In this document: one piece after another, positions 41,901 to 64,000 of the stretch
Layout: each line of letters starts with the position of its first letter
Position numbering within the stretch: position 1 is the first letter of the stretch
Source of the DNA: Cycas panzhihuaensis
Lineage: Eukaryota > Plantae > Cycadophyta
Reading direction: 5' to 3'
NCBI GenBank assembly: GCA_023213395.1
Contig: CM041465.1
Coordinates: forward strand, 121,031,741 to 121,095,740
DNA: 64,000 nucleotides
The notes under the pieces: model-generated
Told to the model about the DNA's origin: nothing
What the model saw: only the letters and a program-made list of their open reading frames with translations
Database searches by the model: none
Translations under genes and position numbers: made by a program

Positions 41901-42607
41901 AAATTCTAAGGAGTGATAATGAAAAGAAATATGACAATAATGCTTTCAATCAGTTCTATCTAAATCACGAAATAAAGTGAGAATTCATAGTCCCATACAC
42001 CCCACAACAAAATGGCATTGCTAAAAGAAAGAACCATACCATGATGGAAATGACAAGGTGTATGGTGCATGCGAAGAACTTACCGCCTAAATTTTGGGTA
42101 AAAGTTGTTGGGACTGTTATTTATATCCTAAATGGGATACCAGCAAAATCAGCTCCTAATGTGACCCCTAAAGAAAAGTGGACCAGTCGTAAATGTACCA
42201 TTGACCATTTGAAAACCTTTAGGTGTATTGCATATGTACACATCCCAAACAAAAATGGCAAAAAATTGTATCACAAGAGTTTGAAGTGTATATTTGTGGG
42301 TTATTTTAATCAAACAAAGCTTACAAATTGTGGGATCTACAAGGAAGAAAACTTGTGACGAGTCAGGATGTAAAATATGATGAGTCTAAGATGTATAATG
42401 CTGAGAAGATGTTGTCTGAGAATCCTTTTACCCCCCACTACTTTCATTTCCTATTGGTGCTTCATCAGTCGTAGAGGACAATGAACTAGGTGTTGTGATT
42501 CATACAAAAGAAGGACTGAGTGGAGAAGGTAATAATTAGGATCAATCACGTGTAGAGGCACCTACAACAGCAGGTGTTTCTATGCCATTGTTGGCCAAGA
42601 AGACCAT
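32910..42607 (+). mobile_element. Degenerate Ty1/Copia element (5' LTR split by a Gypsy insertion; gag, protease, integrase; 3' half missing)
   Basis: LTR ends ...TTCACA at 38980, followed by PBS-like TGGTATTGGAG. Knuckle CNYYKKDGHKEENC; integrase HSDVMGP, FVDDYTK, LRSDN. Left boundary approximate. Confidence 0.75.
33462..38917 (-). mobile_element. Full-length degenerate chromovirus (Ty3/Gypsy); LTRs 33462-33910 and 38469-38917
   Basis: Perfect TSD CTTGT (33457-33461, 38918-38922); iMet PBS (plus 38455-38466); PPT 33913-33923. RT MCVDY/PFGLTNA/FFDDIL, RNase H LECDASG, integrase ISMDFI, chromodomain EYLIKWK...ATWE. Confidence 0.95.
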
Positions 42608-43256
42608 TGTGTGTGGGAGATAAGTCACAAGATTTAGGGGTTTTTTAAGACAAAATAGAGTATAATTTTAGTTTTGAGGTGTGACCAATTGGAACTAGGT
42701 GTGGCCTATCGCGCCAAAGTGAGATCAGGTGCGACTTGGAGTGCAATCAAATCACAAACACTGTATGACTAGGTCGTAGGGTTGCAATCTAAGTTTTCTA
42801 CAGGGAAGAAAACTTGTGATGAGTCAGGATGTAAAATTTGATGAGTCTGAGATGTATCATGCTGAGAAGATGTTGTTTGAAGAATCCTTTTACCCCCCAC
42901 TACTTTCATTTCCTATTGGTGCTTCATCAATCGTAGAGGACAACGAACTAGGTGTTGTGATTCATACAAAAGAAGGACTGAGTGGAGAAGGTAATAATTA
43001 GGAGCAATCACGTGTAGAGGCACCTACAACAACAAGTGTTTCTATGCCATTGTTGGCCAAGAAGACCATTGTGTGTGGGAAATGAGTCACAAAAGATTTA
43101 GGGGTTTTTTAAGTCAAAACAGAGTATAATTCTAGTTTTGAGGTGCGACCAATTGCAACTAGGTGTGGCCTAGTGCGACAAATGAGATCAGGTGCGACTT
43201 GGAGTGCAATCAATTCACAAACACTGTACGGCTAGGTCATAGGGTTACAATCTAAG
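42336..43256. repeat. ~460-bp tandem duplication (42336-42793 and 42797-43256)
   Basis: Two collinear copies starting TCTACA(A/G)GGAAGAAAACTTGTGA and ending CAATCTAAG. Confidence 0.9.
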
Positions 43257-44200
43257 TGTGACCTGAATTGCGACTAAAACTCTAATTGTAATTAAAAGTT
43301 AGTTGAGGACTTATCTTCGTGTGAACATCATGTAATAAAATGGTCCGGTTAGTTAGAATGGCTAAGTCATCGATGTAACAGAATGTGTTATAGCTTGTAT
43401 AAGTAAGTTCGATGGATGTAACAGATGTCAGATATAGCTTTTGGATTTCGCTCTCTTGCATTCTATATTATAACGACTTGAGTTGTAGCTTGTATGTAGT
43501 TAGTTGTACTATTCAGCCTGCATATGGTTGTGAGAGGGTTGGACGTAGGCTCCTTTGTGAGTAATAAAGATTTGGTTTGCATTCACACGACGTAATTCCT
43601 TGTGCTTGCTTATCAGTGTAATGTGCATAAATTCATGTAAGATAACGTGACAACATGCATTGGTTCCATTGCCAATTGAACCCAAGGAAAAGAATTAAAC
43701 ATGGCTAGAGTTGAGTAGATGATTAGTTCCTCTTCCATGCCACCAAGGGTTGTGATGGAGAAGAAATCTAAGATGCACCAAGAATGAGGAGAATGTTGGG
43801 CTAAGGATAGAATTTAGGCGAGGGTTTGAAAACCTAGATTTTCGATTACAGCAAAGAAATAGGTGAAGAGGTGACCACCTACAAAAGCAACAGAGCAATG
43901 CAAGTTGATTTTGAAAGATAAGAGAGAAAAAGGAGATCGGGCTGATGAAATAACGGTCAAAAGTCATGCCCAAGAATTGGCAGCTCAAATAGAAGAAAAC
44001 CAATGGTGCATATTGGAAGAGGACCTCCTGAGGAAAGATCAGTTACAAGTAAAAGTTGCTGAAGAAGAGGAACATGTAGGTGTAACAATAACATTGAGCA
44101 ATGAAGGCAATTCCATAAATTTGGAATTATATAGTACAACTAGTGGACGGTGGGACTGTAGGAATGAGTGGATAGGAGTAGGAGACATGTCACAAAGCAC
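43070..44200 (+). mobile_element. Gypsy-type LTR (~43070-43655) with tRNA-Glu-like PBS and short internal remnant
   Basis: TG...CA ends, TATA-like element at ~43463, TGGTTCCATTGCC at 43661. Confidence 0.55.
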
Positions 44201-44892: not shown

Positions 44893-45075
44893 AAGAGATC
44901 AACCAGAACCAAGTGGTCAATGCACATCCTGTCGTTGATTTGGAACCAGAACTAAGTGTCATCCACATCCTATCGTTGAATTGACTCAACCAGAACTAAG
45001 TGGTCAATGCACATCCTGTCATTTGATTATGATCAACCAGAACTAAGTGTCATCAACATCCTGTCGTTGATTTGC
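44893..45075. repeat. Minisatellite, about four copies of 40-50 bp
   Basis: AACCAGAACTAAGTG(G)TCA..CACATCCTGTCGTTGATTT repeated. Confidence 0.8.
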
Positions 45076-46366
45076 GTTTGCAGTTTCCTTTACAAAGCTT
45101 CCAAAAAATTTCATCATCTTCATGCAGTACATGCTAGTTGTTATCATTAATGTGTGAAAATCACGCTCATTGTCTTGCTTCTCCAAATGTCATAATCTTG
45201 GCTTACAATATCGTGCTTGATTTTATGCACTATTGTCATTTTCCAAGACACTGTTGCTTAATAGAATTGTTAGGTGTTTTCATTAACACCGCAACACTGC
45301 TATTATCATTACCATAACATAATATGCTTCAGCAATAAGCTTACCCAACTCACAAATGAAAGAGTTTGAGGTAGACAAAGGTATGATAAGTATCATGCAG
45401 GTTGTTAAGAGTTATATACTCTACAATTCATAAGTCACTCGTCTATTTCAGTTTCTGCACATAGAGACTAGACATGTTTCAAGAGTAAGCAAGTATCAAG
45501 ACTCTAATAAATCGTTAAGAGTCATTTTGCATCATATGCAAACAAATAAAGATGAGCAATCTACTCATCAACCACTAGCAAATTGATGAATGCTAGTGTT
45601 CCAGGTTGTAATTCTGCCAAGTCATGTCAAGTCATGTTGTATGACACCATGTTGTGATATATTGTGGTGCACCATGTTGCCTTTAATTGGATATGATTAG
45701 GCTTCCTGTCTTCTCCTTCAACAATTCCCATAGGTCTTTTGTAGAGAATCCGGTGCAAACTGTTCCACATCTGCTCCCAAGGAACGCGATCTACTTGCTG
45801 ATATACGTGAGGATCTGTGAGTTGTCGCATAGCCTCGCCAACGTACCACGACTTGTTGAGAACCACTATGCCAAGGTTTTTGTCTGCAGGCTTGATGATA
45901 ATATTCCTGTCTCGTCGAAGTGAAGACAGGGCCTTCTGAAGTTTAGGCAGGAAAGGACTAGCTTCCTTTCGCAGGGTATCACGAAGCCGCTGGAGTAGAG
46001 TAGCTTTACCAATCCGGATGATTTGCTCGAGAGGGGGATAACGCTTGGGAGGGCTCCAGTTGGGATTGGGAATCCTGAAAGGATCGACTCGCTTCTTATC
46101 ATCTTCCTTGTTGAAGGAATGCCGGAGTCGCAGAAGATGAGCGAAGCTTTCATACTCCTTAGTTACATCCTGTGTGTTCATAGGAGGCGGGCGCGGAATG
46201 AACTTAAGACCGAATCCTAAGAGCTTACTCTCATAATAAGAGAGCCTTCTGTCAGAGAGGTTGTTGATTGCCAAATTTGTGATCCGGCGCTCTATCTGGG
46301 AAGGCAACATCCTGGAGAAAAATACCAAGGCAAAGTAAGCTCTATCAAGGACCGGTCCCCACCTTG

Positions 46367-48367
46367 TTAATCTTGCGCGCGCCTTGGGGTGGCGCTTCTG
46401 CCCCGAGAATGCGGACGAGCTCGAGGACCGCCACCCTGTTGATTCCATTGTGGTTGTTGGAACCACTGCGCTTGCGGCATCTGAGGAGGCTGCTGCTAGA
46501 ATTGGGTCGGCATCCCCTAAGGAACATTCATCGGCTAGAAATTCTGCCAACTCTGCCACGGACCTCGGTGCCTTTGAAGTGCGACGAGGTTGATTTTGTT
46601 GCGACTGCCTTCTTTCTGATGAGGTCGGCCGTGAGGCAGATCGGACAGGCGTCTTCGAACGAGCTCGCGAGTTCGACCTCTGATTTGAGGACGATGGCTG
46701 CGCAGCAGCGGGAGTGGAGCTGCTCCCTGCCCCACTCCCAAGTGGCTCATTTTTTGGACTCTGTTGATTTGCATTGTTGTTCTGTTGCCTGTTAGAGTTC
46801 TTCTTTCTTTTATTGTTCTTTTTGTTCTTTGCCTTCTTCGATTGATTACTGGAAGATGGCGGCGGGATCGATGACAAGCTGTGGAAGCGAGAACCGGACA
46901 AGAGATTTTTGAGGTCTCTGATCTGGGCTTGCAGTGGCGTGCCACGGTTATGATGTTGTTTACCAGTTCGGCAATCGAGGGTTCCACTTGCATAGTATCT
47001 GCATCATTCATTGTTGCATCACGAGCTTCATGTCGCGCGGAGTCAGCGGATTGTCTCAGACTATCGCCAATAGCTTTTTCCATCAGCCATTGGTTACGTT
47101 TGAATTCGAAATCTTCCACGGCTTTATCGAACCAAGCACCTGCAGTAGCTGTAGGAATAGCTGTGCCAAAAAAGTTAACCTGGAAAAGAGAGTTACAAAG
47201 AGTTTCCAGAACTTTCCTGAAGTTGGTGGAACTTTGCGTGATTTCGTCCCGGGCTTTGTCCTTAGCAGTAGCGAGAGAAAGGATATACTGGTCCAGGAAC
47301 TTGCCATTCGCTTCGTTCAGGATCTGCTCGAATGCGGCATGCATTTGCGCTTGCAGGACTTCGTCAGCAACCTTCGTTTTAGGAGGCGAGATCTTGAGAC
47401 TGGAAGGAAACGAACCCACGGCCTTGAGTTCCTGCATCTTGAGCTCCAAACGGGCGGATTTGTCATGCTGCCAAGTTTGCCTTTTAAATTCGGCAAACAC
47501 TTTGGAGACAAGGTTATTAATCTGCGGTGGAAGCGGAGAAGAAGAAGAAGAGGTAGATGGTTGATTAGCATTTGCAGGACGGGAGGAATTGTTAGCGGGA
47601 ACGGAAAAAGAAACTTGCCGAGCAGGAGGGATTGAGAAAGACGGAGGAATCGGTCTGCGATCATTGAGATGCTTTTCTAAATCGGTGCGTTGTTGCTCTG
47701 ACTCGGCGCGCTGTCTTTCAAAATCAGTACGTTGCGTTGCAAACTGTTCATCGAAACTTCCTTTCTGAATGGCTAGCTGCTCGTGGATCCGGCATTCAAA
47801 GTCATTCTATGTGGCCTGCAAACGCTAGCTCTGCGCCTCCTCGGCTTCTTTGCGCTCGATTTCAAGGCGACTGTGATAGGGATGCCTTTCAGTTTAAAGG
47901 GCTGTGACGGTGGACTGCAACATGGTGCGCTCTGCGTTAACTCTGTTAACATCCTCTCTGAGCTGCGATCTTTCTTCATTGAACTTTCTCCGATCTTCGT
48001 TGAACTGGGAACGAATCTCGTTGAATGAAGCGGCATCATCTCTGAGTCTGCGGTTCTCCCTACGAATAACTTCCATACGACCTTTGAACTTTAACCGATA
48101 ACTGCGCGCATAAGTTGCACGAATTTCTTGTAGGGCACGTTTGCGAACTTGTTCAAGTTCTACAGAAAGAATGTCTGGGACTGGAATAATTGCGGAGCCT
48201 GCTTGCTCTTGCGGCAGAACGACTGCTACACATTTTCTGCTGGAAACCTGCTGTGAATCAACAGACATGGATCGGGGGATTCTGTGAACTGGAATCTTGG
48301 TGGGGTTTTCAGCAGGGTTCTGAGAAGGGTTTTGAGAAGGATTCTCAGATGTTGAACTGGAAGTCAT
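46367..48367 (-). pseudogene. ORF1 of arm A, ~666 codons reconstructed (SQNP repeats, coiled coil, helical middle, basic/Ser/Gln-rich tail)
   Basis: ATG at 48367 and TAA at 46367-46369 are in one frame. The ORF is broken by C>T/G>A nonsense changes and compensating indels. The ORF-track pieces of 157 aa and 321 aa are parts of it. Confidence 0.75.
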
Positions 48368-48588
48368 TTTGAGGCAACGACTGAAACAAGATTTTAGGTT
48401 CTAAAACTGGATATAACTCAAGCGTGCAGCAGAAAAAGACTTAAGGTTCAAGAAATAAACTTAACCAAAAACAAGTGTAGCAGATATGGGAGAAACTTAA
48501 AAGAAATTAACTAAACTATTATTAGTACATGCAAAAAGAGCTAGGACATGAAAATACGACAACTTATCTTTATAAACTTGGAAAGGGA

Positions 48589-48627
48589 ATCCGAACGCGT
48601 TTCGCTCTTATGAGCTCATCAACGGAC
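48589..48627 (-). ncRNA. Minimal type I hammerhead ribozyme motif (U3 variant), arm A
   Basis: Minus strand reads GUCCG-UUGAUGA-GCUC(AUAA)GAGC-GAAAC-GC-GUU-CGGAU: stem I, core, stem II, GAAA and a palindromic mini-stem III. Confidence 0.8.
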
Positions 48628-48926
48628 ATGGATCTCCAAGTATAAAAGATGAGAATATATAGGCCTCAAGGTAATCGGGTGCCTTGCGCGGTAAGATTGC
48701 GCGGAAATCATGCCGATACCGAGGACCAATCAAATCCTAGCAAATGGGCGGGCAGATTAATAACCTTGCAGCAACTTTATTTGGGTAGCTGGATGCAGCA
48801 ACCTGAATGGGTTGCTCTGCATCAGGCCGAAATCTGCTCCTCATCAAGAAAGTACCGAGTTTCCTTGGATTTCTCCAACAAATCATAGCCCTCGGAATAT
48901 GCCTCAAGTCAGGGTCTTCTTGGCAA

Positions 48927-48997
48927 AGCCCAAAAAGTTTAGGGTTTAAGCTCACGCGTAAACTGGGAGTAGTCCTAAACCCTAAACTTTTTGGGCT
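48927..48997. promoter_or_regulatory. Palindrome axis 1: inverted telomere repeats/telo-boxes and site II motifs around a 27-nt loop
   Basis: AGCCCA-AAAAG-TTTAGGGTTTA [loop 48949-48975] TAAACCCTAAA-CTTTT-TGGGCT. Function is inferred. Confidence 0.6.
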
Positions 48998-49515
48998 TTG
49001 CCAAGAAGACCCCGACTTGAGGCATATTCCAAGGGCTATGATCTGTTCGAGAATCAAGCTCTGTGCTTGATGAGGAGCAGCGGCACGATCTTGAGCAACC
49101 GAGTTGCTACGGATCTAGTTCGATCGATGGTGCCGGAACAAATTAATCTGCCGCCCATATGCTAGGATTGATCGCCTTGTCGGCATGATTCTCACGCAAT
49201 CTTACGTGCAAGGCTGCCGACTGAGGTCTATATTCTTAGCCTGAGTAATTGGAGATCCATGTCCCCGGATGAGCTCATAAGCGGCAGCGTTCAGATTTCC
49301 TTTCCAAGTTTATAAAGATAAGTTGTTTTATTTTCATGTCCTAGCTCTTTTTGCATGTATTAATAATCGTTTAGTTAATTTCTTTTAAGTTTCTCCCATA
49401 TCTGCTACACTTGTTTTTGGTCAAGTTTATTTCTTGAACCTTAAGTCTTTTTCTGCACTTCGAAAGTTATATCCAGTTTTAGAACCTAAAATCTTGTTTC
49501 AGTCGTTGCCTCAAA

Positions 49516-51437
49516 ATGACTTCCGATTCAACATCTGAGAATCCTTCTCAAAACCCTTCTCAAAACCCTTCTCAGAACCCTGCTGAAAACCTTGTCGAGA
49601 ATCCAGTTCGCAGAATCCCCCGGTCCATGTCTGTTGATTCACACCAGGTTTTCAGCAGAAAACGTGTAGCAGTCGTTCCGCCGCCAGAGCAAGCAAGTTC
49701 CGCAATCATTCTAGTCTCAGACGTTCCTTCTGTAGAACTTGAATAAGTTCGCAAATGTGTCCAACAGGAAATTCACGCAACTTATGCGCAGGTTATCGAA
49801 GCCGAAGTTCATTGCCGCGCGGAAGTTATTCTTAGGGAGAACCGCAGATTCAGAGATGATGCCACTTCATTCAACGAGATTCGTTCCCAGTTCAACGAAG
49901 ATCGGAGAAAGTTCAATGAAGAAAGATCGCAGCTCAGAGAGGATGTTAACAGAGCTAACGCAGAGCGCACCATGTTGCGATCACCATCGCGACCGCTTCA
50001 AACCGAAGGATTGCTATCGTGGTCGCTGAAATCGGCACAAGCGGGAGGCGTGAGCTAGCGTTCGCGTTCTGAAATGACTTTGAGCGACGGATCCACGGTA
50101 ACAAGCCATTGAAGGCGATGCGACGGCGACTTGCAGCGCAGCGTGTTGATTTTGAAGGCGGCTCAAGTCGGGCGAGCCGCCAATTTGGAAAGCGTCTCAA
50201 TGATCGCGGGCCATTCCTCCGTCTTTCGATCCTCTGCTCGCAAGTTTCTTTCCATTCTGCTAACAATTCCTCCCGTCTGCGAATCTTGATCAACCATCTA
50301 CCTCTTCTTCTTCTTCTCTACTTCCACCGCATATTAATAACCTTGTTTCAGCGTTTGCGGTCAAAAATCAAACTTGGCGGCGCCAGCGGTTCGCCGTTTG
50401 GGCTCGAGGATGTAGGAACTCAGGCGTGGTCGTTCCTTCCGATCTCAGATCTCGCCTCTAAAGCGATGGTTGACGAAGTCTGGCTCAGATGCATGCCTCA
50501 TTCGGCGGATCTGAACAGCGAATGGCAAGTTCTGGACCAAGATATCCTTTCTACCGTATGACAAAGCCCGGGACGAAATCACTCAAAGTTCCACCGACCT
50601 CAGGGATGTTTTGCAAACTCTTTGTAACTCTCTTTCCCACGTTAACTTTATTGGCACAACTATTCCTATAGCTACTGCTAGTGCTTGGTTCGATAAAGCC
50701 GTGGAAGATTCGGTCAAATGAACCAATGGTGATGGAAAAGCCATCGACGATGCGAGACAATCTGTTGACTCAGCGCGACAGGAAACTCGTGACGCAACAA
50801 TGAATGATGTAGATACTATGCAAGCGGAACCCTCGATTGCCGAACTGGTAAACAATACTGTTAACCAGAAGTATGCCGCTCTGCAAGCCCAGATCAGAGA
50901 CCTCAAAAATCTCTTGTCCGGTTCTGTTTGCATTGTCATCGATCTGCCGCCATCTTCGATGTCGATCAAAGAAGAAGAAGAAGAAGAAAAAGAACAATAA
51001 AAGAAAGGAGAACTCTAACAGGCAACATAACAGCAATGCAAATCAACAGAGTCCAAAAATCGGGCCGGCAGGGAGTGGGCGGGCGGCCCACTCCCGTGCT
51101 GCGACCATCGTCCTCAGATCAGAGGTCGAACTCGCGAGCTTGTTCGAAGACGCCTGCTCGATCTGCCTCACAGCCGCCCTCAGGAGAAAGAAGGCAGCTG
51201 CGACAAAATCAACCTCGTCGCAACTTTCAAAGGCGTCGAGGTCCATGGCAGAGTTGGCAGAATTTCAAGCCAATGAATGTTCCTTGGGGGATGCCGACCC
51301 AATTCTGGCAGCAGTGTCCTCAAATGCCGCAGGCGCAGTGGTTCCAATAACCACAATGGAATCAGCAGGGTGGCGGTCCTCGAGCTCGTCCGCATTCTCG
51401 GGGCAGAAGCGCCACCCCAACGCGTGTGCAAGATTAA
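49516..51437 (+). pseudogene. ORF1 of arm B (many indels)
   Basis: MTSDSTSENPSQNP start; collinear with arm A ORF1. Confidence 0.7.
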
Positions 51438-52519
51438 CAAGGTGGAGACCGGTCCTTGACAGAGCTTACTTTGCCTTGGTATTTTTCTCCAGGATGTCAC
51501 CTTCCCAGATAGAGCGCTGGATCACAAATTTGGCAATCCACAACCTCTCTGACAGAAGGCTCTCTTATTATGAGAGTAAGCTCTTAGGATTCGGTCTTAA
51601 GTTCATTACGCGCCCGCCTCCTATGAACACACAGGATGTAATTAAGGAGTATGAAAGCTTCGCTCGTCTTCTCCGACTCTGTCATTTCTTCGGCAAGGAA
51701 GATGATAAGAAGCGAGTCGATCCTTTTAGGATTCCCAATCCCAATTGGAACCCTCCCAGGCGTTATCTGCCTCTTGAGTGGATCATCCGGATTAGTAAAG
51801 CTACCTGCAAAAGGAAGCTAGTCCTTTCCTGCCTAAACTTCAGAAGGCGTTGTCTTCACTTCAAGCCTGCAGTCAAAAACCTTGGCACAGTGGTTCTCAA
51901 CAAGTCGTGGTACGTTGGCGAGGCTATGCGACAACTCACAGATCCTCAGTTATATTAGCAAGTAGATCGCGTTCCTTAGGAGCAGATGTGGAACAGTTTG
52001 CACTGGATTCTCTACAGGTTTTCCTCCATTTTGGGTTCCAGAATGAAGTTCCTGTTAAAGAACCCCCCTGACTCTGCCCTCCCTTGCGCCTTCTACTTGC
52101 TTCCAAAAATCCATAAACCTGTTCTTGCTGGGCGTCCCATTTGTGGTTATTGTAATTACCCCCTTGAGCCTACGTCCAAATTTCTTCATTACATGATCTT
52201 GCAAGTTCTGCTAAAGCGGAAAAACCACTTGCCCGTTTCCATTTCACTCCTGAAATCCCTGGCTAACTTCAAACTCCCATTGAATGTCTTGTTATTTACC
52301 TTTGATGTTGAGTCATTATACCCTAGCATTCCTACTTCTGAAGGTCTTGCTGCCCTTAGAGATATGTTGGGTGATTATTTTGTTGGGGATCTTCGGATGA
52401 TTAACTGCCTTGTCGACCTTGCTGAACTTGTTCTCAAGGAACACTACCTTGAGTTCAATGGTTTATTCTTCAAACAAGTTCGAGGCACTGCTATGGGTAG
52501 TAATTTTGCTATTGTCTAT
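51245..52519 (+). pseudogene. Penelope-like RT ORF of arm B (partial)
   Basis: RT N-terminus through motif B', with stops and a deletion. Confidence 0.85.
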
Positions 52520-53741
52520 CATTAATGCGTGAAAATCATGCTCATTGTCTTGCTTCTCCAAATGTCATAATCTTGGCTTACAATATCGTGCTTGATTTTA
52601 TGCACTATTGTCATTTTCCAAGACACTGTTGCTTAATAGAATTGTTTGGTTTTTTCATTAATACCACAACACTGCTATTATCATTACCATAACATAATAT
52701 GCTTTAGCAATAAGCTTACCCAACTCACAAATGAAAGAGTTTGAGGTAGACAAAGGTATGATAAGTATCATGCAGGTTGTTAAGAGTTATATACTCTACA
52801 ATTCAAAAGTCACTCGTCTCTTTCAATTTCTGCACATGGAGACTAGACATGTTTCAAGAGTAAGCAAGTATCAAGACTCTAATAAATGATTAAGAGTCAT
52901 TTTGCATCATATGCAAACAAATAAATATGAGTAATCTACTCATCAACCACTAGCAAATTGATGAATGCTAGTGTTCCAGGTTGTAATTCTGCCAAGTCAT
53001 GTCGAGTCATGTTGTATGACACCATGTTGTGATATATTGTGGTGCACCATGTTGCCTTTGATTGGATATGATTAGGCTTCCTGTCTTCTCCTTCAACAAC
53101 TCGCATAGGTCTTCTGTAGAGAATCCGGTGCAAACTGTTCCACATCTGCTCCCAAGGAATGCAATCTACTTGCTGATATACCTGAGGATCTGTGAGTTGT
53201 CGCATAGCCTCGCCAATGTACCACGACTTGTTGAGAACCACTGTGCCAAGGTTTTTGTCTGCAAGCTTGATGATAATATTCCTGTCTCATCGAAGTGAAG
53301 GCAGGGCCTTCTAAAGTTTAGGCAGGAAAGGACTAGCTTCCTTTCGCAGGGTATCACGAGGTCGTTGGAGTAGAGTAGCTTTACTGATCCAGATGAACCG
53401 CTCGAGAGGGGGATAATGCCTGGGAGGGTTCCAGTTGGGATTGGGAATGCTGAAAGGATCGACTCGCTTCTTATCATCTTTCTTGCCGAAGAAATGCCGG
53501 AGTCGGAGAAGACGAGCGAAGCTTTCATACTCCTTAATTACATCCTGTGTGTTCACAGGAGGCAGGCGCGAAATGAACTTACGACCGAATCCTAAGGGCT
53601 TACTCTCATAATAAGAGAGCCTTCTGTCAGAGAGGTTGTTGATTGCCAAATTTGTGATTCGGCGCTCTATCTGGGAAGGCAACATCCTGGAGAAAAATAC
53701 CAAGGCAAAGTAAGCTCTGTCAAGAACCGGTCCCCACCTTG

Positions 53742-55716
53742 TTAATCTTGCGCGCGCCTTGGGGTGGCGCTTCTGCCCTGAGAATGCGGACGAGCTCGAG
53801 GACCGCCACCCTGCTGATTCCATTATGGTTGTTGGAACCACTGCGCTTGCGGCGTCTGAGGAGGCTACTGCCAGAATTGGGTCGGCATCCCCCAAGGAAC
53901 ATTCATCTACTGGAAATTCTGCCAACTCTGCCATGGACTTTGGCGCCTTTAAAAGTTGCGACGAGGTTGGTTTTGTTGCGACTGCCTTCTTTCTGATGAG
54001 GCGGTAGTGAGGCGGTCAGGCGGGCGTGTTGAGCAGGCTCGCGAGTTCGACCTCTGATCTGAGGACGATGGCTGCGCAACAACGGGAGTGGAGCTGCTCC
54101 CTGCCCCACTCCCAAGCGGCTCGTCTTTTGGACTCTGTTGATTTGCATTGCTGTTCTGTTGCCTGTTAGAGTTCTCCTTTCTTTTATTGTTGTTTTTCTT
54201 CTTCTTCTTCTTCGACTGATTATTGGAAGATGGCGAAGCAGGATCGATGATAATTTGTGCAAGCGAGCCAGGACAAGAGATTTTGAGGTCTACGATGCGG
54301 GCTTGCGGCGGCATACTTTACTTGATGTTGTTTACCAGTTCGGCAATCGAGGGTTCCGCTTGCATAGTATCTGCATCATTCATTGTTGCGTCACGAGCGT
54401 CCTGTCGCGCGGAGTCAACGGATTGTCTCAGACTGTCTCCGATAGCTTTTTCCATCAGCCATTGGTTACATTTGAATTCGAAATCTTCCACGGCTTTATC
54501 GAACCAAGCACCTGCAGTAGCTATAGGAATAGTTGTGCCAATAAAGTTAACGTGGGAAAGAGAGTTACAAAGAGTTTCCAAAACTTCCCTGAAGTTGGTG
54601 GAACTTTGCGTGATTTCGTCCCGGGCTTTGTCCTTAGCAGCAGCGAGAGAAAGGATATACTGGTCCAGGAACTTGCCATTCGCTTCGTTCTGGATCTGCT
54701 CAGATGCGGCATGCATCTGAGCTTGCAGGACTTCGTCAACAACCATCGTTTTAGGAGGCGAGATCTTGAGACTGGAAGGAAACGAACCCACGGCCTTGAG
54801 TTCCCGCATCCTGAGCTCCAAACGGGCGGATCTGTCATGCTGCCAAGTTTGCCTTTTAAATTCGGCAAACACATTGGAGACAAGGTTATTAATCTGCAGT
54901 GGAAGTGGAGAAGAAGAATAAGAGGTAGATGGTTGATTAGCATTTGCAGGACGGGAGGAATTGTTAGCAAGAATGGAAAAAGAAACTTGCGGAGCAGGAG
55001 GGACTGAGAAAGACGGAGGAATCGGTCTGCGATCATTAAGATGCTTTTCCAAATCGGCACGTTGTCGCTCTGTCCCGACGCCCTGTCTTTCAAAATCAGC
55101 ACGTTGCGTTGCAAGCTGTTCATCGAAACTGCCTTTCTGAATGGCTAGCTGCTCGTGGAAATTCATTCTATATGTCCTGCAAATGCTAGCTCTGCGCCTC
55201 CTCGGCTTCTTTGCGCTCGATTTCAAGGCGACTGCGATAGCGATCTCTTTCAGTTTAAAGGGCTGCGACGGTGGATTGCAACATGGTGCGCTCTGCATTA
55301 ACTCTGTTAACATCCTCTCTGAGCTACGATCTTTCTTCATTGAAGTTTCTCCGATCTTCGTTGAACTGGGAACGGATCTCGTTGAATGAAGCGGCATTAT
55401 CTCTGAGTCTGCGGTTCTCCCTAAGAATAACTTTTGCGCGGTACTGAACTTCGGCTTCAATAACCTGTGCATAAGTTGCGCGAATTTCCTGTCGGGCACG
55501 TTCGCGAACTTGTTCAAGTTCTACAGAAGGAATGTCTGGGACTGGAATGATTGCGGAGCCTGCTTGCTCTGGCGGCGGAACGACTGCTACACGTTTTCTG
55601 CTGGAAACTTGCTGTGAATCAACAGACATGGACCGGGGGATTCTGCGAACTGGAATCTCGACAAGGTTTTCAGAAGGGTTTTGAGAAGGATTCTCAGATG
55701 TTGAATCGGAAGTCAT
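53742..55716 (-). pseudogene. ORF1 of arm C
   Basis: ORF-track pieces of 130, 399 and 121 aa are collinear with arm A ORF1. Confidence 0.75.
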
Positions 55717-55937
55717 TTTGAGGCAACGACTGAAACAAGATTTTAGGTTCTAAAACTGGATATAACTCGAGCGTGCAGCAGAAAAAGACTTAAGGTTCAA
55801 GAAATAAACTTGACCAAAAACAAGTGTAGCAGATATGGGAGAAACTTAAAAGAAATTAACTAAACGATTATTAATACATGCAAAAAGAGCTAGGACATGA
55901 AAATAAAACAACTTATCTTTATAAACTTGGAAAGGAA

Positions 55938-55976
55938 ATCCGAACGCGTTTCGCTCTTATGAGCTCATCAACGGAC
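55938..55976 (-). ncRNA. Minimal type I hammerhead ribozyme motif, arm C
   Basis: Same sequence as the arm A motif. Confidence 0.8.
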
Positions 55977-56258
55977 ATGGATCTCCAAGTACAAAAGATG
56001 AGAATATATAGACCTCAAGGTAATCGGGTGCCTTGCGCGATAAGATTGCGCGGGAATCAAATCCTAGCAAATGGGCGGGCAAATTAATAACCTTATCTGG
56101 CAACCTGACTGGACTGAACTGGATCTGCAACAACCTGAATGGGTTGCTCTGCATCAGGCCAAAATCTGCTCCTCATCAAGAAAGTATCGAGTTTCCTTGG
56201 ATTTCTCCAACAAATCATAGCCCTCGGAATATGCCTCAAGTCGGGGTCTTCTTGGCAA

Positions 56259-56329
56259 AGCCCAAAAAGTTTAGGGTTTAAGCTCATGCATAAACTGGGA
56301 GTAGTCCTAAACCCTAAACTTTTTGGGCT
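56259..56329. promoter_or_regulatory. Palindrome axis 2 (same structure; loop 56281-56307)
   Basis: Differs from axis 1 only by CpG decay in the loop (CACGCGT to CATGCAT). Confidence 0.6.
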
Positions 56330-56873
56330 TTGCCAAGAAGACCCCGACTTGAGGCATATTTCGAGGGCTATGATTTGTTGGAGAAATCCAAGGAAACTCG
56401 GTACTTTCTTGATGAGGAGCAGATTTTGGCCTGATGGAGAGCAACCCATCGGTCTTCTGATCGATTCGATCGATCGGTACCAGATAATGTCTGCCTGCCC
56501 ATTTGCTAGGATTTGATTGGCCCTCGGTATCGGCATGATTCCTGCGCAATCTTACCGCGCAAGGCATTCGATTACCTTGAGGTCTATATATTCTCATCTT
56601 TTGTACTTGGAGATCCATGTCGACGATGAGCCCGTAAGCGAAGCGGCTCGATTTCCTTTCCAAGTTTATAAAGATAAGTTGTTTTATTTTCATGTCCTAG
56701 CTCTTTTTGCATGTATTAATAATCGTTTAGTTAATTTCTTTTAAGTTTCTCCCATATTTGCTACACTTTTTTTTGGTTAACTTTATTTCTTGAACCTTAA
56801 GTCTTTTTCTACTGCACGCTTGAGTTATATCCAGTTTTAGAACCTAAAATCTTGTTTCAGTCATTGCCTCAAA

Positions 56874-58779
56874 ATGACCTCCGGTTTAACATCTGAGAAT
56901 CCTTCTCAAAACCCTGTTGAAAACCCTGTCGAGATTCGATTCGCGAATCCCGATCCATGTCGTTGATTCACGGCGGGTTTCGGTGAGAAACGTGTAGCGA
57001 TGCTGCCGCGAGCAAGTTCCGCAATCATTCCAGTCCCAGACATTCCTTCTGTAGAACCTGAACAAGTTCGGCGGCGTGCCCGGCATTCGCACAACTTATC
57101 GCGGGTTATCGGCCGAGATTGATCTGCGTCGAAGTTATTCTTAGGGAGAACGCGGTTCGATGATGCTTCATTCAACGAGATTCGTTCGATTCAACGGATC
57201 GAGAAAGTTCAATGAAGAAAGATCGCGACAGAGAGGATGTTAACGAGTTAACGAGCGCACCATGTTGCGATCACCGTCGCGACCTTCAAACTGCGGTATC
57301 GCTATCGCAATCGCCTTGAAATCGAGCACAAAGAAGCCGAGGAGGCGCAGAGCTAGCATTTGCAGGCCATACAGAATGACTTTGAACGCCAGATCCATGA
57401 GCAACTAGCCATTCAGAAAGGCAGTTGTGATGAGCAGCTTGCAACGCAACGTCTTGGTGAGCGACGCGCCGGTCGGGGCGTCAATGTGCCGATTTGGAAA
57501 AGCGTCTCAATGATCGCAGACCGATTCCTTCGTCTTTGTCAGTCCCTCGTGCTCCGCAAGTTTCTTTTTCCATTCCTGCTAACAATTCCTCCCGTCCTGC
57601 AGATGCTGATCAACCATCTACCTCTTCTTCTTCTTCTCCGCTTCCATTGCAGATTAATAACCTTGTCTCCAAAGCGTTTGCCGAATTCAAAAGGCAAACT
57701 TGGCGACATGATGATCCGCCGTTTGGCTCGAGATGCGGAACCGGCGTGGGTTCGTTCCTTCGATCTCAAGATCTCGCCTCCTAAAACGATGGTTGTTGAC
57801 GAAGTCTTGCTGGTAAATGCATGTCGCGTGGCGGATCGGCAGCGAATGGCAAGTTCCTGGACCAGTGTACCCTTTCTCTCGCTGCTGCTAAGGACAAAGC
57901 CAGGGACGAAATCACGCAAAATTCCACCAACTTCAGGGAAGTTTTGGAAACTCTTTGTAACTCTCTTTCCCACGTTAACTTTATTGGCACAACTATTCCT
58001 ATAGCTACTGCAGGTGCTTGGTTCGATAAAGCTATGGAAGATTTTGAATTCAAATGTAACCAATGGCTGATGGGAAACACTATTGGAGCGATGCGAGACA
58101 ATCGACTGGCGGCGACAGAAGCTCGTGACGCAACAATGAATGATGCTGATACTATGCAAGCGGAACCCTCGATTGCGGCCTGTAAACAATCGTTTAACCA
58201 GAAGTATGCCGCTCTGCAAGCCCAGATCAGAGACCTCAAAAATCTCTTGTCCGGTTCTGTTTGCACAGCTGTCACTGATCCTGCTTCGCCATCTTCCAGT
58301 AATCAGTCGAAGAAGAAGAAGAAGAAGAAAAAGAACAATAAAAGAAAGGAGAACTCTAACAGGCAACATAACAGCAATGCAAATCAACAGAGTCCAAAAA
58401 TCGGGCTGCTTGGGAGTGGGGCAGGGAGCGGCTCCACTCCCGCTGCTGCGCAGCCATCGTCCTCAGATCAGAGGTCGAACTCGCGAGCTCGTTCGAAGAC
58501 GCCTGCTCGATCTGCCTCACAGCCGCCCTTAGGAGAAAGAAGGCAGCCGCAACAAATTCAACCTCATCGCAACTTTCAGAGGCGTCGAGGTCCATGGCAG
58601 AGTTGGCAGAATTTCCAGCCGATGAATGTTCCTTGGGGGATGCCGACCCAATTGGCGGCGACTCCTCGGATGTCGCGCGATGGTTCCAATAACCACAATG
58701 GAATCAGCAGGGTGGCGGTCCTCGAGCTCGTCCGCATTCTCAGGGCAGAAGCACCACCCCAAGGCGCGTGCAAGATTAA
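56874..58779 (+). pseudogene. ORF1 of arm D
   Basis: ATG at 56874; the 326-aa ORF-track piece covers the C-terminal half. Confidence 0.7.
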
Positions 58780-60110
58780 CAAGGTGGGGATCGGTCCTTG
58801 ACAGAGCTTACTTCGCCTTGGTATTTTTGTCCAGGATGTCGCCTTCCCAGATAGAGCGCCGGATCACAAATTTGGCAATCCACAACCTCTCTGACAGAAG
58901 GCTCTCTTATTATGAGAGTAAGCTCTTAGGATTCAGTCTTAAGTTCATTCTGCGCCCGCTTGCTATGAACACACAGGATGTAATTAAGGAGTATGAAAGC
59001 TTCGCTCGTCTTCTCCAACTCCGTCATTTCTTCGGCAAGGAAGATGATCAGAAGCGAGTCGATCCCTTCAGGATTGCCAATCCCAATTGGAACCCTCCTA
59101 GGCGTTATCCCCCTCTCGAGCAGATCATCCGGATTGGTAAAGCTACTCTACTTTAGCGGCTTGGTGATACCCTGCGAAAGGAAGCTAGTCCTTTCCCGCC
59201 TAAACTTCAAAAGGCCCTGTCTTCACTTCGACGAAATAGGAATATTATCATCAAGCCTACAGACAAAAACCTTGGCACAGTGGTTCTCAAGAAGTCATGG
59301 TACGTTGGCGAGGCTATGCGACAACTCATAGATCCTCAGTTATATCAGCAAGTAGATCGTGTTCCTTGGGAGCAGATGTGGAATAGTTTGCACCGGATTC
59401 TCTACAGGTTTTCTTCCATTTTGGGTTCCAGAATGAAGTTCCTGTTAAAGAACCCACCTGACTGTGCCCTCCCCTGCGCGTTCTACTTGCTTCCAAAAAT
59501 CCATAAACCTGTTCTTGCTGGGCGTCCCATTTGTGGTTATTGTAATTACCCCCTTGAGCTTGCCTCCAAATTTCTTCATTACATGATCTTGCAAGTTCTG
59601 CTAAAGCAGAAAAACCACTTGCCCGATTCCATTTCACTACTGAAATCCTTGCCTAACTTCAAACTCCCATTGAATGTCTTGTTATTTACCTTTGATGTTG
59701 AGTCATTATACCCTAGCATTCCTACTTCTGAAGGTCTTGCTGCCCTTAGAGATATGTTGGGTGATTATTTTGTTGGGGATCTTCGGATGATTAACTGCCT
59801 TGTCGACCTTGCTGAACTTGTTCTCAAGGAACACTACCTTGAGTTCAATGGTTTATTCTTCAAACAAGTTCGAGGCACTGCTATGGGTAGTAATTTTGTT
59901 GTTGTCTATGCTTGCCTGTTTCTTTGTCATCTTGAAAAAATTGTAGAAAACAAGCTCGGCCTTTCTCAACTTCTCTTCTATAAGAGGTTTATTGATGATG
60001 CTTTTGGAGTTTGGAACGGTTCACATTCAGATCTTCAGGTCTTCTTTGATGCCTACTAGCAGGTTTATCCTAACAACATTAGGATTACTCCAGTTGTCTC
60101 CAATTCACAG
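58594..60110 (+). pseudogene. Penelope-like (TERT-related) RT ORF of arm D (partial)
   Basis: Motifs A (FDVESLYPSI), B' (GTAMGS) and C (RFIDD), with TAG stops at 59154 and 60057. Start codon is either 58594 or 58836. Confidence 0.9.
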
Positions 60111-60890
60111 ACATTTTAAGAAGTCTGTAATTAAGAAATGAAGGAGAAAAAGTACTTTAAATCACCGCAAGTATGAGTGCCACATCACTAAGTGACCGCA
60201 AGGTGAATTACACTTAAAAGAGTACAAATAAAAAGGTTTAAAAAGACCTTTAACATACATTATTTAAAGAGGAATAAGTACATTAAAAGATCCTCTTAAA
60301 GTGCTTCAAAAGAGGACTAAGTACTTTAAAATCTCCCCTTTAAAACTACTCTCAAAGTACATTGAAAAATCATTTTAAAATAGAGTCAAAGTATAACTCT
60401 AAAGAGGATTAAGTACATGAGAAAATACACATGAAATACTCTTTTATTGAAGCCAAGAAATACCCTTTAAAAGAAGATAAAATGAAGCTTGAAAGCTTAT
60501 AGTGTTCATAAGGTTTTATACCCTTTTACACCACCAAAAAATGTACCTTGAGAAAGAGGATTAAGAGATAAAAATCCCCTTGAGAGAAGACAAAATAACA
60601 AGGTAAAAGGTTTAATGTCTTCTTGAGGTACTTTTGTATGAAGCCAATAAAGGTGCATTTATGCCACCAAAAGATGTACCTTAATGAAGAGAATAAAATG
60701 TATTAAAAATTCCTCTTAAGGTACTTTACATATCCGCCAAAAGATGCTTTACAAAAGAGGATGATCCACATGAAAAACTCCTCTCAAAACATCATTATGC
60801 CACCAATAACATCTCCTTAAAAAAGAGGTCAAAGTGCAGAGAAGAACTCCTCTTTAAGTACTTTTTATGTCACGATGATGAAATACACTT

Positions 60891-63800
60891 TGTAGCGAGT
60901 CCTTTACCCAATTGGACAGAAAATAGAGCAGAGTAGGACGAATTCACAGACACAGAACAATAATAGAGAAAAAAGTCCACAAATGCTAAACCCAAATAGA
61001 TCAAATTCACAAATGGCAACACCTTTTGCTCCAAAAGTATATCTTCAATTATGGGTTAAATACAAAAATACGATACAAGAATGCACAAATTATAAGTAGA
61101 GTTCCAACATGAGTACCTGTACTGCCTGTCACAATCGCCAAACCCTTCGAGGCGGGGATTCTCCCAGAAATTGCAGCCCTAAGGCCGAAAATCTGCACTT
61201 GCCTTGAGGCCGAAAATGAAGAGAGAGAGCTTCACGAATGGATCATTTCGAATGATCTCAAAGTCCCTATATATAGGCGCATAAACTGGGACAAAATGAA
61301 GTCGGCCGAGGCGAGGAGGAGTGCGCTCAAAATAATCATGAGAAGTCGGCTCTGACTTCTCCAAAAAGCTGGCGAGCTATCTTTAAATGGTCATAACTTT
61401 TGATAGGGATGTCGGAATTGACTTTCGTACGAACCGTTGGAATAAATCGTTCGAGGCCTATCATTTGAATGCTTATATGCTATAACTTTGACCATATTTT
61501 GGAGTGCTACAAGTCCCCTCCCCTTGAAATTGTGCTTTGCCCTCAAAGCCTTTGGCGTGTTCGGAAATTGTTTTAACCATTCATCGTTTTCCCAAGTGGA
61601 GTCTTCAATATCCAAGTTCTTCCATTTGATGAGATGCTCTTTGATGCATGCGGACCTAAGAGATTGAGTCGGGATTGTAAGATTCCGTCAGGTTCTAGCG
61701 TCATCTTTCCTTCCTCATCGAGCTCTGGTATGTTGGATTGAGGAATGATCTTTTCCCCAATTTTCTTCTTTAGACAGGATACATGGAAAACATTATGAAT
61801 TTTTGTGTTTTTTGGGAGTTGTAAGTGGTAGGCGACTTCACCTACTTTGGAAGTGATTTTGTAAAGACCAAAGTATCTAGGTGCTAGCTTTTGATTGTTT
61901 CTTTTCTGTAAGGACATCTGTTTGTATGGTTGAAGGCGTAAGAAGACCCAATCTCCTACTTCAAATTGTTGTTCCGAGCGTTTTGGATCGGCCTGTTGTT
62001 TCATTCATTTTGTACAATTGCTAGGTTATCCTTCAATTTCTCGATGGTTTCCTCCATTTGCTTAGATGTTCTTATTTGCTGGACCCATGAAGGTCTATTC
62101 GAGTTAATAATGATGGTGGCATATAGCCATACAAAGCACGGAAAGGTGTCATTTTGTTGAAGAATGATATGTGGTGTTGTACCGATTACGCTAAATGTAA
62201 CCATTGATGCCATTGCTTTTGTTTATGCGGCGAAGTTTCTCAAGTATCCTTCTAAGCATTTGTTGACAATCTCTGTTTGCCCATCCGTGCGAGGATGGTA
62301 TGATGCGCTCATCTTGAGTTTTGTGCACGCAATTTTGAATAGATCCTGCCAAAATTTACTAGTAAATTTTGGGTCACGGTCACTTACAATTGCTTTAGGA
62401 AAACCATGCAACCTATGGATCTCCTTCATATATAGTTACGCCACGTCGCTAGCCTTAGTCATCGATTTTAGTCCTCTGAAGTGGCCATTTTGGTGAGGCG
62501 ATCTATGATGACGGTGCGTCCTTTCCTTCAGAGCAAGGTAATCCGGTTATAAAATCCATGGATATTTCATCCCATTTTTGTTCTTGCGTTGGTAGCGACT
62601 GGAGTAACCCTGGCATTTTTATGCATTCAATCCTGTTTCGTTGACAGGTATCACATTCCGCCACGAACTTTTGAACGTCTGTTTTTAATCCTTTCCAATA
62701 AAATGAAGCTCTTATCTTCCTGTATGTCTTGTCAATCCCTGTGTGACCTGCTATCGGTGTGGAATGGCCTTCTTGTAATATTATCTCCTTTAGCCCTGAT
62801 CTTCTAGGAATGCAAATCTTTCCTTTCTTGAGTATTATTCCTGTTGTATCTCATATGAGCAGTTTGTCCTTCCTTACTTTGTCGATCAATTGTTTGTACT
62901 TGGATCGTTGTCGTATTCCTTCTTTAATGTCTCATGCCATTTGGAGTAGCCACCGATATTGTATGTAATCTTGGTTTCGCATGAGTTTCTTGGAATTCTT
63001 GAGAGGCGTCTGCTATGACATTGTCTTTACCCTTTTTGTACACAATGGAGAATTCAAATGTTTGTAATTTGCTCACCCACTTTTGTTGTTAAATCGGCGG
63101 TGTCTTACGATTTAAGAAGTATTTGAGGCCCATCGTGGTCCGTTCGTGCACTGGAAGGAACCGCCTAGTAAATCATGTCTCCTTTGGTTGATCGCGTGCA
63201 TTATGGCTAGCATCTCCTTATCATAGATGGGCTTTAACTTTTCTGTTATTCAATTTCCTGCTCTAAATGCGCTATCGGTCTTCGTCTTGTAATAGGGCCG
63301 ACTCCTATGCCAAACCCTAAAGCATCGCATTCCAAAATGAATGGTTTTGAGAAGTGTAGGACTGCTAAAACTGGGGCTCTTACCATTGCACTTTTTAGTT
63401 CTTCAAAGGCTTTGTTGGTCGTTTCGTTCCATGTGAAAGCATCCTTTTTTGTTAGATCTGTAAGTGGAGCTGCTATGTTAGCATATCCTCTTATGAATTT
63501 CCTGAGGTATCTAGTTGCTCCTAGAAAGCTATGAACTCCCGTGACATTCTTTGGTGCTGGCCATTCTATTATTGCTTGGACCTTCTTGGGGTCGACCTTG
63601 ATTCTGTTTGGAGTAATGATATGACCGAGGTATTCGAGTTCCTGTTGGCCAAAGAGCATTTTTCTTGTTTGCAAAGAATAAACCTTTGCTAAAATTTCTA
63701 GGGCTAATCTCGGGTGTTCCAAATGTTCTCTCCATGTTTCTTTGTAAATGAGGATATCATCAAAAAGATTAGTACGAATTTCCTCAAACATTCCTTGAAT

Positions 63801-64000
63801 GTGGAGTTCAAAGTGACACAGGCGTTCTTTGGAGGCGTTGGTTAGACCAAATGGCATCACTTTGAATTGAGCAGTCCCTCATGAGTTATGAATCTTTGTC
63901 TTGTGGGCGTCCCCTCTTTTACCCGAATTTGATGGTAACCCGATCGAGAGGTCTATCTTGGAAGTATTGCACTCCATGTATTTCGTCTAGTAGGTCATCG
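60891..64000 (-). mobile_element. Chromovirus (Ty3/Gypsy) 3' part: 3' LTR 60891-61511, chromodomain, integrase, RNase H, RT; continues beyond the window
   Basis: LTR ends TGTAGC...GCTACA; PPT 61514-61525. Peptides VGDWVFLRLQPY, HGFPKAIVSDRD, SASYHPRTDGQTE, MPFGLTNA, LECDA. Confidence 0.92.

Follow-up and report, generated by a model that had tools for sequence, protein, structure and literature searches.

An old, tandemly duplicated head-to-head palindrome of a Penelope-like element with telomere-type repeats at its axes in Cycas panzhihuaensis

Penelope-like elements (PLEs) without an endonuclease are the closest retroelement relatives of telomerase, and to our knowledge they have been documented in plants mainly from spike moss. 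Here we analysed a 64,000-nucleotide (nt) stretch of the Cycas panzhihuaensis genome (assembly GCA_023213395.1, contig CM041465.1, positions 121,031,741 to 121,095,740; hereafter the window), which carries four partial copies of a PLE arranged as two palindromes. The arrangement is genuine, old and unusual, although the element itself is of a known kind, and it goes back to one fold-back and one duplication. It merits attention as the site of a PLE with two open reading frames (ORFs), apparently of an endonuclease-less lineage and with a hammerhead relic, in a very large plant genome, the telomere-repeat-bearing 5' boundary of this element being the centre of an interstitial palindrome.

Endonuclease-deficient, telomere-associated PLEs have been described as Athena in rotifers, as Coprina, and as the Selaginella elements of Gladyshev and Arkhipova 2007 (PMC8557442, PMC6431247, PMC12477314). 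The window element resembles elements of the Athena/Coprina type in its reverse transcriptase (RT) clade, which lacks GIY-YIG and in which Selaginella and Ginkgo proteins are the nearest named relatives, in its two ORFs, in the short C-strand telomere repeats that its sense strand bears at the 5' boundary, probably in a hammerhead, of which a sub-threshold relic is left, and in having related loci (L003 and L010) whose ends consist of a hammerhead and then (CCCTAAA)n. It differs from them in that the locus is deeply interstitial and organised head-to-head instead of head-to-tail, in that the 3' ends are missing, so that the defining 3' hammerhead-plus-repeat module is out of view, and in its host, a seed plant with very large chromosomes. 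Chlamys PLE-X, i.e. the endonuclease-lost Chlamys elements of Selaginella and Chara, carries a CxC motif upstream of the RT and targets 28S ribosomal DNA (PMC8557442), whereas visual inspection of the translated N-terminal part of the window RT and of P0001, its 604-residue relative, revealed no CxC motif, and the flank of the locus is a high-copy repeat and not ribosomal DNA.

With the inverted pseudo-long terminal repeats (pLTRs) of endonuclease-bearing PLEs such as Penelope and Naiad (PMC3846280, PMC8557442) the palindrome shares the head-to-head layout, a near-palindromic junction, microhomology at the junctions and the reading as a product of self-priming. The inverted copy of a pLTR, however, is 5'-truncated, keeps the 3' end, usually spans a few hundred base pairs and is part of an insert with a target-site duplication (TSD); to the copying of the 3' end in pLTRs the first-pass annotation had rightly drawn attention (PMC8557442). 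The inverted copy in the window retains 3.2 kb of the 5' side but lacks the 3' part, and a TSD is absent, which sets it apart from a canonical pLTR.

Two further processes provide points of comparison. Fold-back inversions, which arise from hairpin-capped or eroded ends and in breakage-fusion-bridge cycles, combine inverted arms around a short unique spacer with microhomology at the junctions and a secondary duplication nearby, and all these traits recur at the locus; its arms, however, are only 3.2 kb long and its axis lies exactly at the boundary of a retroelement that bears telomere repeats. Endonuclease-independent LINE-1 insertions were reportedly found at breaks and dysfunctional telomeres by Morrish et al. 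in 2002 and 2007. They are said to use free 3' ends and to yield 3'-truncated copies with microhomology and without TSD, in which they resemble the arrangement described here, but LINE-1 belongs to another class of retroelements, and head-to-head dimers with full 5' sides are not its typical product.

Anatomy of the palindromes and order of events

Self-BLAST and a repeat search of the window revealed inverted matches at 45740-52016 and 53114-59407, i.e. two palindromes of 6.3 kb, each with a 27-nt spacer at its axis. The four arms, designated A, B, C and D, measure 3209, 3041, 3167 and 3100 nt within the palindromes and are all oriented outward from the axis. Read in this direction, each begins with TAAACCCTAAAC at its inner end, followed by a leader of about 570-590 nt, ORF1 and the start of the RT ORF, with ORF1 of arm C opening with an ATG at 55716. 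Together with the translations these data confirm the first-pass annotation in its description of outward-pointing arms of about 3.2 kb that are separated by 27 nt and contain the 5' region, ORF1 and the RT start. The innermost arms of axis 2 (56139-56280 and 56308-56449) are 98% complementary, and axis 1 has a matching layout (48807-48948 and 48976 onward). The individual features are listed below, with residue numbers referring to P0001.

Arm A, 45740..48948, minus strand: PLE from the RT start (residue ~226, LHRILY) via ORF1 and leader to the axis; tblastn match to residues 3-226 at 46349-45729
Axis 1, 48938..48986, no strand: TTTAGGGTTTA, 27-nt spacer at 48949-48975, TAAACCCTAAA
Arm B, 48976..52519, plus strand: PLE cut at RT residue ~392 by the duplication breakpoint; tblastn match to residues 2-392 at 51452-52519
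Arm C, 53114..56280, minus strand: duplicate of arm A, ending at residue 226; ORF1 pieces at 55716-55324 and 55517-54318, RT start at 53727-53104
Axis 2, 56270..56318, no strand: TTTAGGGTTTA, 27-nt spacer at 56281-56307, TAAACCCTAAA
Arm D, 56308..60113, plus strand: longest copy, comprising leader and ORF1 and extending to RT residue ~459; tblastn match to residues 2-459 at 58794-60113

All arms end within the RT, as had been noted before: A and C stop at LHRILY, which is encoded at 45758 (minus strand) and 53133 (minus strand) and again in arm D at 59388 (plus strand), and arm D stops after RFIDD (59985). A tblastn search with P0001 detected no further RT sequence elsewhere in the window. The outer end of arm D (~60113-60130) adjoins AT-rich unrelated DNA that begins with TGTAATTAAG; as the window stops at 64000, this end may also reflect a nested insertion, with the remaining RT located beyond the window. 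In line with the earlier observation, sequence comparison at 45740 and 60113 gave no TSD.

Between arms, identity on clean columns is 90-94%, and the arms differ by dozens of insertions and deletions (indels). Near the axis their likeness rises to 96-99%, and in the distal parts the pairwise identities are nearly star-like, with all pairs at 92-94%. The two spacers, which are unique within the window, differ at 2 of 27 positions. As single-stranded DNA, axis 2 is predicted to fold with -64.6 kcal/mol (z = -17.8). Palindromes with short loops are a known artefact of long reads, but an arm divergence of 6-10%, dozens of indels and a structure that occurs twice with diverged spacers exclude a fold-back read artefact, so that assembly from chimeric fold-back reads is scarcely conceivable. 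The structure is thus old genomic DNA, and the argument that the first-pass annotation had drawn from the arm differences holds. A candidate microRNA gene at 48891-49033 was rejected since the Rfam matches (MIR2670, MIR4239 and mir-3477) lie far under the gathering score and reflect the perfect hairpin of axis 1.

Self-comparison of the region from 44 to 62 kb showed that the palindromes are parts of two 7.4-kb units in direct repeat (45132-52519 and 52507-59909; 88% identity including gaps). Each unit consists of 608 bp of non-PLE sequence, termed 'pre', a minus-strand arm (A or C), the spacer and a plus-strand arm (B or D), the latter with an extra 0.5 kb beyond the palindrome. At 52507-52519 'pre' follows directly on the RT of arm B, which ends there at the duplication breakpoint; comparison of this junction with arm D and with the left flank of unit 1 revealed the microhomology given below. 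The features of the duplication are:

'pre' copy 1, 45132..45739, no strand: high-copy repeat fragment, left part of the 7.4-kb unit, 96.5% identical to 52507-53113
Tandem-duplication junction, 52507..52519, no strand: overlap of the units with an imperfect microhomology of ~8 nt, GTTGT(C)TAT
'pre' copy 2, 52520..53113, no strand: high-copy repeat fragment

In the four-arm alignment 63 informative sites group A with C and B with D, versus 19 and 9 for the other pairings (22 versus 8 and 4 on gap-free columns), and 12 indels are common to B and D, with any other pairing sharing at most two. Since, in addition, the unit spans non-PLE flank and both arms, the palindrome is older than the duplication. 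The locus is a plain tandem segmental duplication of a single palindrome, and A and C as well as B and D are duplicates of each other and not independent insertions. The junction common to A and C, which gave the appearance of recurrence, is therefore not recurrent; both arms end at the same residue because they inherited it via one segmental duplication. As the distal arm distances are nearly star-like, formation and duplication of the palindrome were probably not far apart in time. A rolling-hairpin or ODIRA-type (origin-dependent inverted-repeat amplification) triplication was rejected, as the flank fragment is present twice in direct orientation and never inverted.

Patches that deviate by 20-30% from the other three arms were found in arm D (56870-57240) and in arm B (49900-50480 and 48976-49370), and private deletions of 1-9 nt number 38 in B and 31 in D versus 3 in A and 8 in C. 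No contig of at least 85% likeness covers the divergent patch of arm D.

The element, its hammerhead relic and related loci

In a phmmer search the window RT matched P0001 with E = 3.6e-86, and 10,833 library proteins were retrieved at E<=1e-3, those examined being PLE-like. The RT motifs AIHNLS..LGFGLKF, FYLLPKIHK, FDVESLYPSIP, GTAMGS and RFIDD are present in the translations. Pfam searches with the window ORFs were uninformative, RVT_1 remaining under threshold on the RT fragments. The best homologues of the arm D RT are P0001 (604 residues, 57% identity), two Ginkgo biloba models (59% and 50%), the Selaginella moellendorffii protein XP_024523476 (45%) and a Closterium protein. A quick maximum-likelihood tree of 108 RT cores was calculated with IQ-TREE from a set without named Athena or Coprina reference sequences. 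In this tree the window RT groups with P0001 and the Ginkgo model P0002 in a clade with 99% support that includes the Selaginella protein. The surrounding clade of 62 members (98% support) is devoid of GIY-YIG, and all 26 GIY-YIG-bearing homologues belong to the other clade. Likewise, Pfam did not detect GIY-YIG in the eight closest relatives of at least 555 residues (555-1305 residues, some of them possibly incomplete gene models), and the domain is present in more distant matches of 770-920 residues. According to tblastn all window copies end before the position expected for the endonuclease, and P0002 also matches the ORF1 region. Based on tree placement and the P0002 match, the element appears to be a two-ORF member of an endonuclease-less lineage of green-plant PLEs. 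The first-pass annotation had recognised a Penelope-like element with two ORFs in a plant lineage, in which it was right; of the RT phylogeny that it had suggested as a check, the tree provides the endonuclease-less clade with Ginkgo and Selaginella, and the placement is relative to these proteins and not to named Athena or Coprina sequences.

The leaders of the minus-strand arms contain sub-threshold matches to the HH9-type hammerhead:

HH9-type hammerhead relic, leader of arm A, 48571..48640, minus strand: Rfam RF02275, 24.7 bits, E 0.028, under the gathering score of 52; core TTGATGAGCTCATAAGAGCGAAACGCGT
HH9-type hammerhead relic, leader of arm C, 55920..55989, minus strand: Rfam RF02275, 27.4 bits, E 0.0035, under the gathering score of 52

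The motif has a palindromic stem III (ACGCGT), whereas none of the four arms has preserved an unmutated CUGAUGA box. The hammerheads of the relatives have intact-looking cores and likewise a palindromic stem III.

For comparison we used 19 metagenomic contigs that encode RTs with 30-48% identity (best segment) to P0001. Several of these related loci are head-to-tail tandems with the order RT, hammerhead, ~216 nt, ORF1 and RT, so that the hammerhead lies between the units, and the spacing from hammerhead to ORF1 equals that in the window; the tandem copies of L008 are 88% alike. None of the 19 loci is head-to-head, all being head-to-tail or single. In two of them, L010 (5754-6302) and L003 (5825-6300), an intact-looking HH9 hammerhead is followed by degenerate repeats and then by perfect (CCCTAAA)n up to the end of the contig, which is an Athena-like 3' module in an organism with (CCCTAAA)n telomeres from a metagenome.

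CCCTAA runs upstream of the RT in L006-L013 were considered as telomere caps and rejected, since they lie inside ORF1, where they encode (PN)n; true terminal arrays are found in L003 and L010 only. Such telomere-like tracts within the coding ORF1 are located at 3064-3087 in L008 and at 5101-5160 in L013, and are also present in L006, L007, L009 and L012. At the corresponding N-terminal region, ORF1 of the window element contains a 12-nt CCTTCTCAAAAC repeat.

Origin of the palindrome

A search for the plant telomere 14-mer with up to two mismatches gave four matches in the window, all of them at the two axes, with 0.41 expected by chance. The inner end of every arm reads (T)CCTAAACCCTAAAC, corresponding to about two plant telomere repeats, a stretch that occurs nowhere else in the 64 kb. 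The left arm ends on the plus strand with ...AAAAAGTTTAGGGTTTA and the right arm on the minus strand with ...AAAAAGTTTAGGGTTTAGGA, so that on either side the G-strand is directed towards the axis. Every arm thus carries, on its sense strand, a C-strand telomere stretch at the 5' boundary. The 5' ends of telomere-attached PLEs have been described as capped in this way, with the C-strand on the sense strand (PMC6431247).

The outer junction was analysed with contigs from low-coverage Logan sets of three individuals of one species and one individual of a related species (best share 0.22). The contigs were placed on 52450-58449 only, and hence only copy 2 of 'pre' is covered. Over this copy (52450-53113) the summed contig depth amounts to 1e4-5e4 in three runs, which shows that 'pre' derives from a very abundant repeat. 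Elsewhere, copies of this repeat extend leftwards exactly like the flank of unit 1 (22 of 22 nt at 45120-45141), and past 53113 they read TGTAAGACTGG..., where the PLE arm instead begins with TGTAGAGAATCC. As the other copies read through this position, the left arm abuts with its outer end on a repeat that was broken at an internal point, and arm and repeat have only the 4 nt TGTA in common there. Inverted arms, a short unique spacer and this junction are the traits found in fold-back inversions.

We propose that a free 3' end snapped back at the capped 5' boundary of the element, that the product was joined to a broken repeat by microhomology and that a tandem duplication followed, and we assign this reading a probability of roughly 0.55. 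In the starting state a two-ORF endonuclease-less PLE would have been located at a free DNA end, or would have been in the course of being copied onto it, with its 5' side and about two telomere-type repeats facing the end. The 3' end of the minus (G-rich) strand would then have snapped back, leaving a loop of 27 nt, and self-templated extension over ~3.2 kb would have generated the head-to-head palindrome. Inside the RT region the new strand would have departed from its template and joined a broken copy of the high-copy repeat via TGTA. Subsequently, a segment of 7.4 kb, comprising 608 bp of the repeat, the palindrome and a further 0.5 kb of right-arm sequence, would have been duplicated in tandem across the imperfect microhomology of ~8 nt to give four arms, and all copies would have decayed since.

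Several observations are consistent with this order of steps. Both units have identical inner boundaries and the same 27-nt spacer, and, because identical boundaries are combined with a short asymmetric spacer, one strand that snapped back and copied itself is suggested. The joining of 5' sides through such a spacer is a signature of snap-back priming, and the fold-back that the first-pass annotation had put forward is supported to this extent. Moreover, both arms are polarised as in synthesis from the flank towards the axis, the left arm (residue 226) is shorter than the right arm (residue 459), as a snap-back copy must be, and microhomology is present both at the duplication junction and at the junction of arm and repeat. 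Elements without an endonuclease require pre-existing 3'-OH ends (PMC8557442). As the axis coincides with a boundary that bears telomere repeats and the lineage appears to lack an endonuclease, a free DNA end would be the most economical start.

The polarity of the arms would also be expected if two cDNAs had been primed from both 3' ends of one double-strand break, or from two PLE-capped chromosome ends, and had been joined head-to-head, and the telomere repeats do face each other as in a telomere-telomere fusion. However, independent copies should differ in truncation or cap, whereas the inner boundary is exactly equal on both sides and includes the same 11-nt repeat stretch, and the likeness of the arms is greatest (96-99%) right beside the axis, which makes this joining very improbable. 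A replication template switch of the FoSTeS/MMBIR type (fork stalling and template switching/microhomology-mediated break-induced replication) at an interstitial site would require no free end: a switch 27 nt upstream of the PLE, 3.2 kb of backward copying and a second switch into a nearby high-copy repeat would yield the same structure. Two junctions with no more than 4 nt of microhomology, the tandem duplication that later arose by microhomology in the same place, the interstitial locus and the star-like distal distances, which suggest events near in time, are all in accordance with it. In this case, however, the coincidence of the switch point with the element boundary and the telomere-type repeats would be due to chance, and we regard such a switch as quite unlikely.

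For the snap-back, the odds are roughly even between the RT of the element acting on nascent cDNA and a host polymerase acting at an eroded or broken end. Snap-back synthesis is a well-known behaviour of RTs and counts for the RT of the element, as does the proposal by Arkhipova et al. that self-priming gave rise to the head-to-head repeats of endonuclease-bearing PLEs (PMC3846280). On the other hand, endonuclease-deficient PLEs do not share the inverted organisation (PMC3846280), and the hammerhead inside the arms and the head-to-tail relatives count against the RT as well. If the RT made the snap-back, the self-priming hypothesis would extend from endonuclease-bearing to telomere-attaching PLEs, and a role in break repair would be indicated; if a host polymerase did so, the palindrome would be an ordinary fold-back inversion that marks a former PLE-capped DNA end.

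The trapped fold-back intermediate envisaged by the first-pass annotation partly overlaps with our proposal, but goes further in assuming a regular route of the lineage: first-strand cDNA reaches the 5' end of the RNA and folds back, the RT of the element synthesises the second strand and the hairpin is captured at a break. In its favour are the short asymmetric spacer that RT snap-back typically leaves, the self-priming already put forward for head-to-head repeats of PLEs (PMC3846280), the dependence of endonuclease-less relatives on free ends, and the fact that the left arm is shorter than the right one. The four arms, however, reduce to one event, RNA processed at the hammerhead would begin ~350 nt away from the axis, each of the 19 closest related loci is either single or head-to-tail, and endonuclease-deficient PLEs have no inverted organisation (PMC3846280). 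The snap-back signature of the envisaged intermediate is thus retained, and the regular hairpin route, though possible, is rather doubtful. Being one old rearrangement that was later duplicated, the axis does not prove a special hairpin replication route.

A number of points weigh against our own proposal of a snap-back at a capped end. The hammerhead relic lies about 300-350 nt inside each arm, with the sub-threshold matches of arms A and C at about 290-380 nt, and RNA processed there would not reach the axis. Contig depth is ~5-50 over the PLE body and, in the three same-species runs, ~50-220 over the inner ~350-430 nt of both arms; the inner segment (55850-56650) has 5-20 times the depth of ORF1, and the depth drops near the hammerhead, contig depth being a crude measure. 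This suggests that ORF1 exists in fewer copies than the inner segment, a module that may be a pLTR-like 3' part or may be common to hammerhead-bearing non-autonomous repeats. Taken together, hammerhead position and inner depth weaken the cDNA version of the snap-back, as the inner segment, instead of being where a processed RNA starts, may represent a pLTR-like module or part of an upstream unit. At present the locus is separated from each end of the sequence by over 100 Mb, and beyond the two telomere repeats there are 24-27 nt of non-telomeric sequence, so that the end was no plainly eroded telomere. The remainder of the broken repeat (TGTAAGACTGG...) was not found on the right flank or elsewhere in the window, indicating that the site is not a simple filled break. 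None of the listed pieces of the low-coverage contigs (best share 0.22) was shown to bridge the axis. Finally, a single event permits no statistics on the mechanism, and the true microhomology at the axis could be read only from the sequence that preceded the event.

One variant of the proposal would fit all observations for and against the RT of the element. In this variant the axis would be the fossil of a PLE-capped DNA end, at which end-primed reverse transcription onto two telomere repeats aborted after ~25 nt, snapped back and sealed the end as a hairpin; the spacer is then predicted to be the 3' terminus of the family RNA. We consider this unlikely, but if true, such an aborted end-primed synthesis at a cap would be direct sequence evidence for self-priming by PLE RTs and for a part of these elements in end healing and break repair in plants.

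Flanking repeats and further observations

The extreme abundance of 'pre' holds in runs of two species, and the repeat fragment extends leftwards to about 45100. Just left of it, a tandem repeat of 47/91 bp is located at 44897-45074. Contig joints to the opposite strand (54328<->58194, 56038<->56547 and others) were rejected as evidence of rearrangement; they have roughly mirror-image positions in the two arms and were read as mapping switches between them.

Further to the left, a 460-bp tandem duplication with 93.5% identity occupies 42336-43257. A likely long terminal repeat retrotransposon was found at 33461-38917, with terminal repeats of 450 bp at 33461-33910 and 38468-38917 that are 89% identical. 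Its interior shows 65% similarity to a stretch on the right flank of the palindromes (61497-63999).

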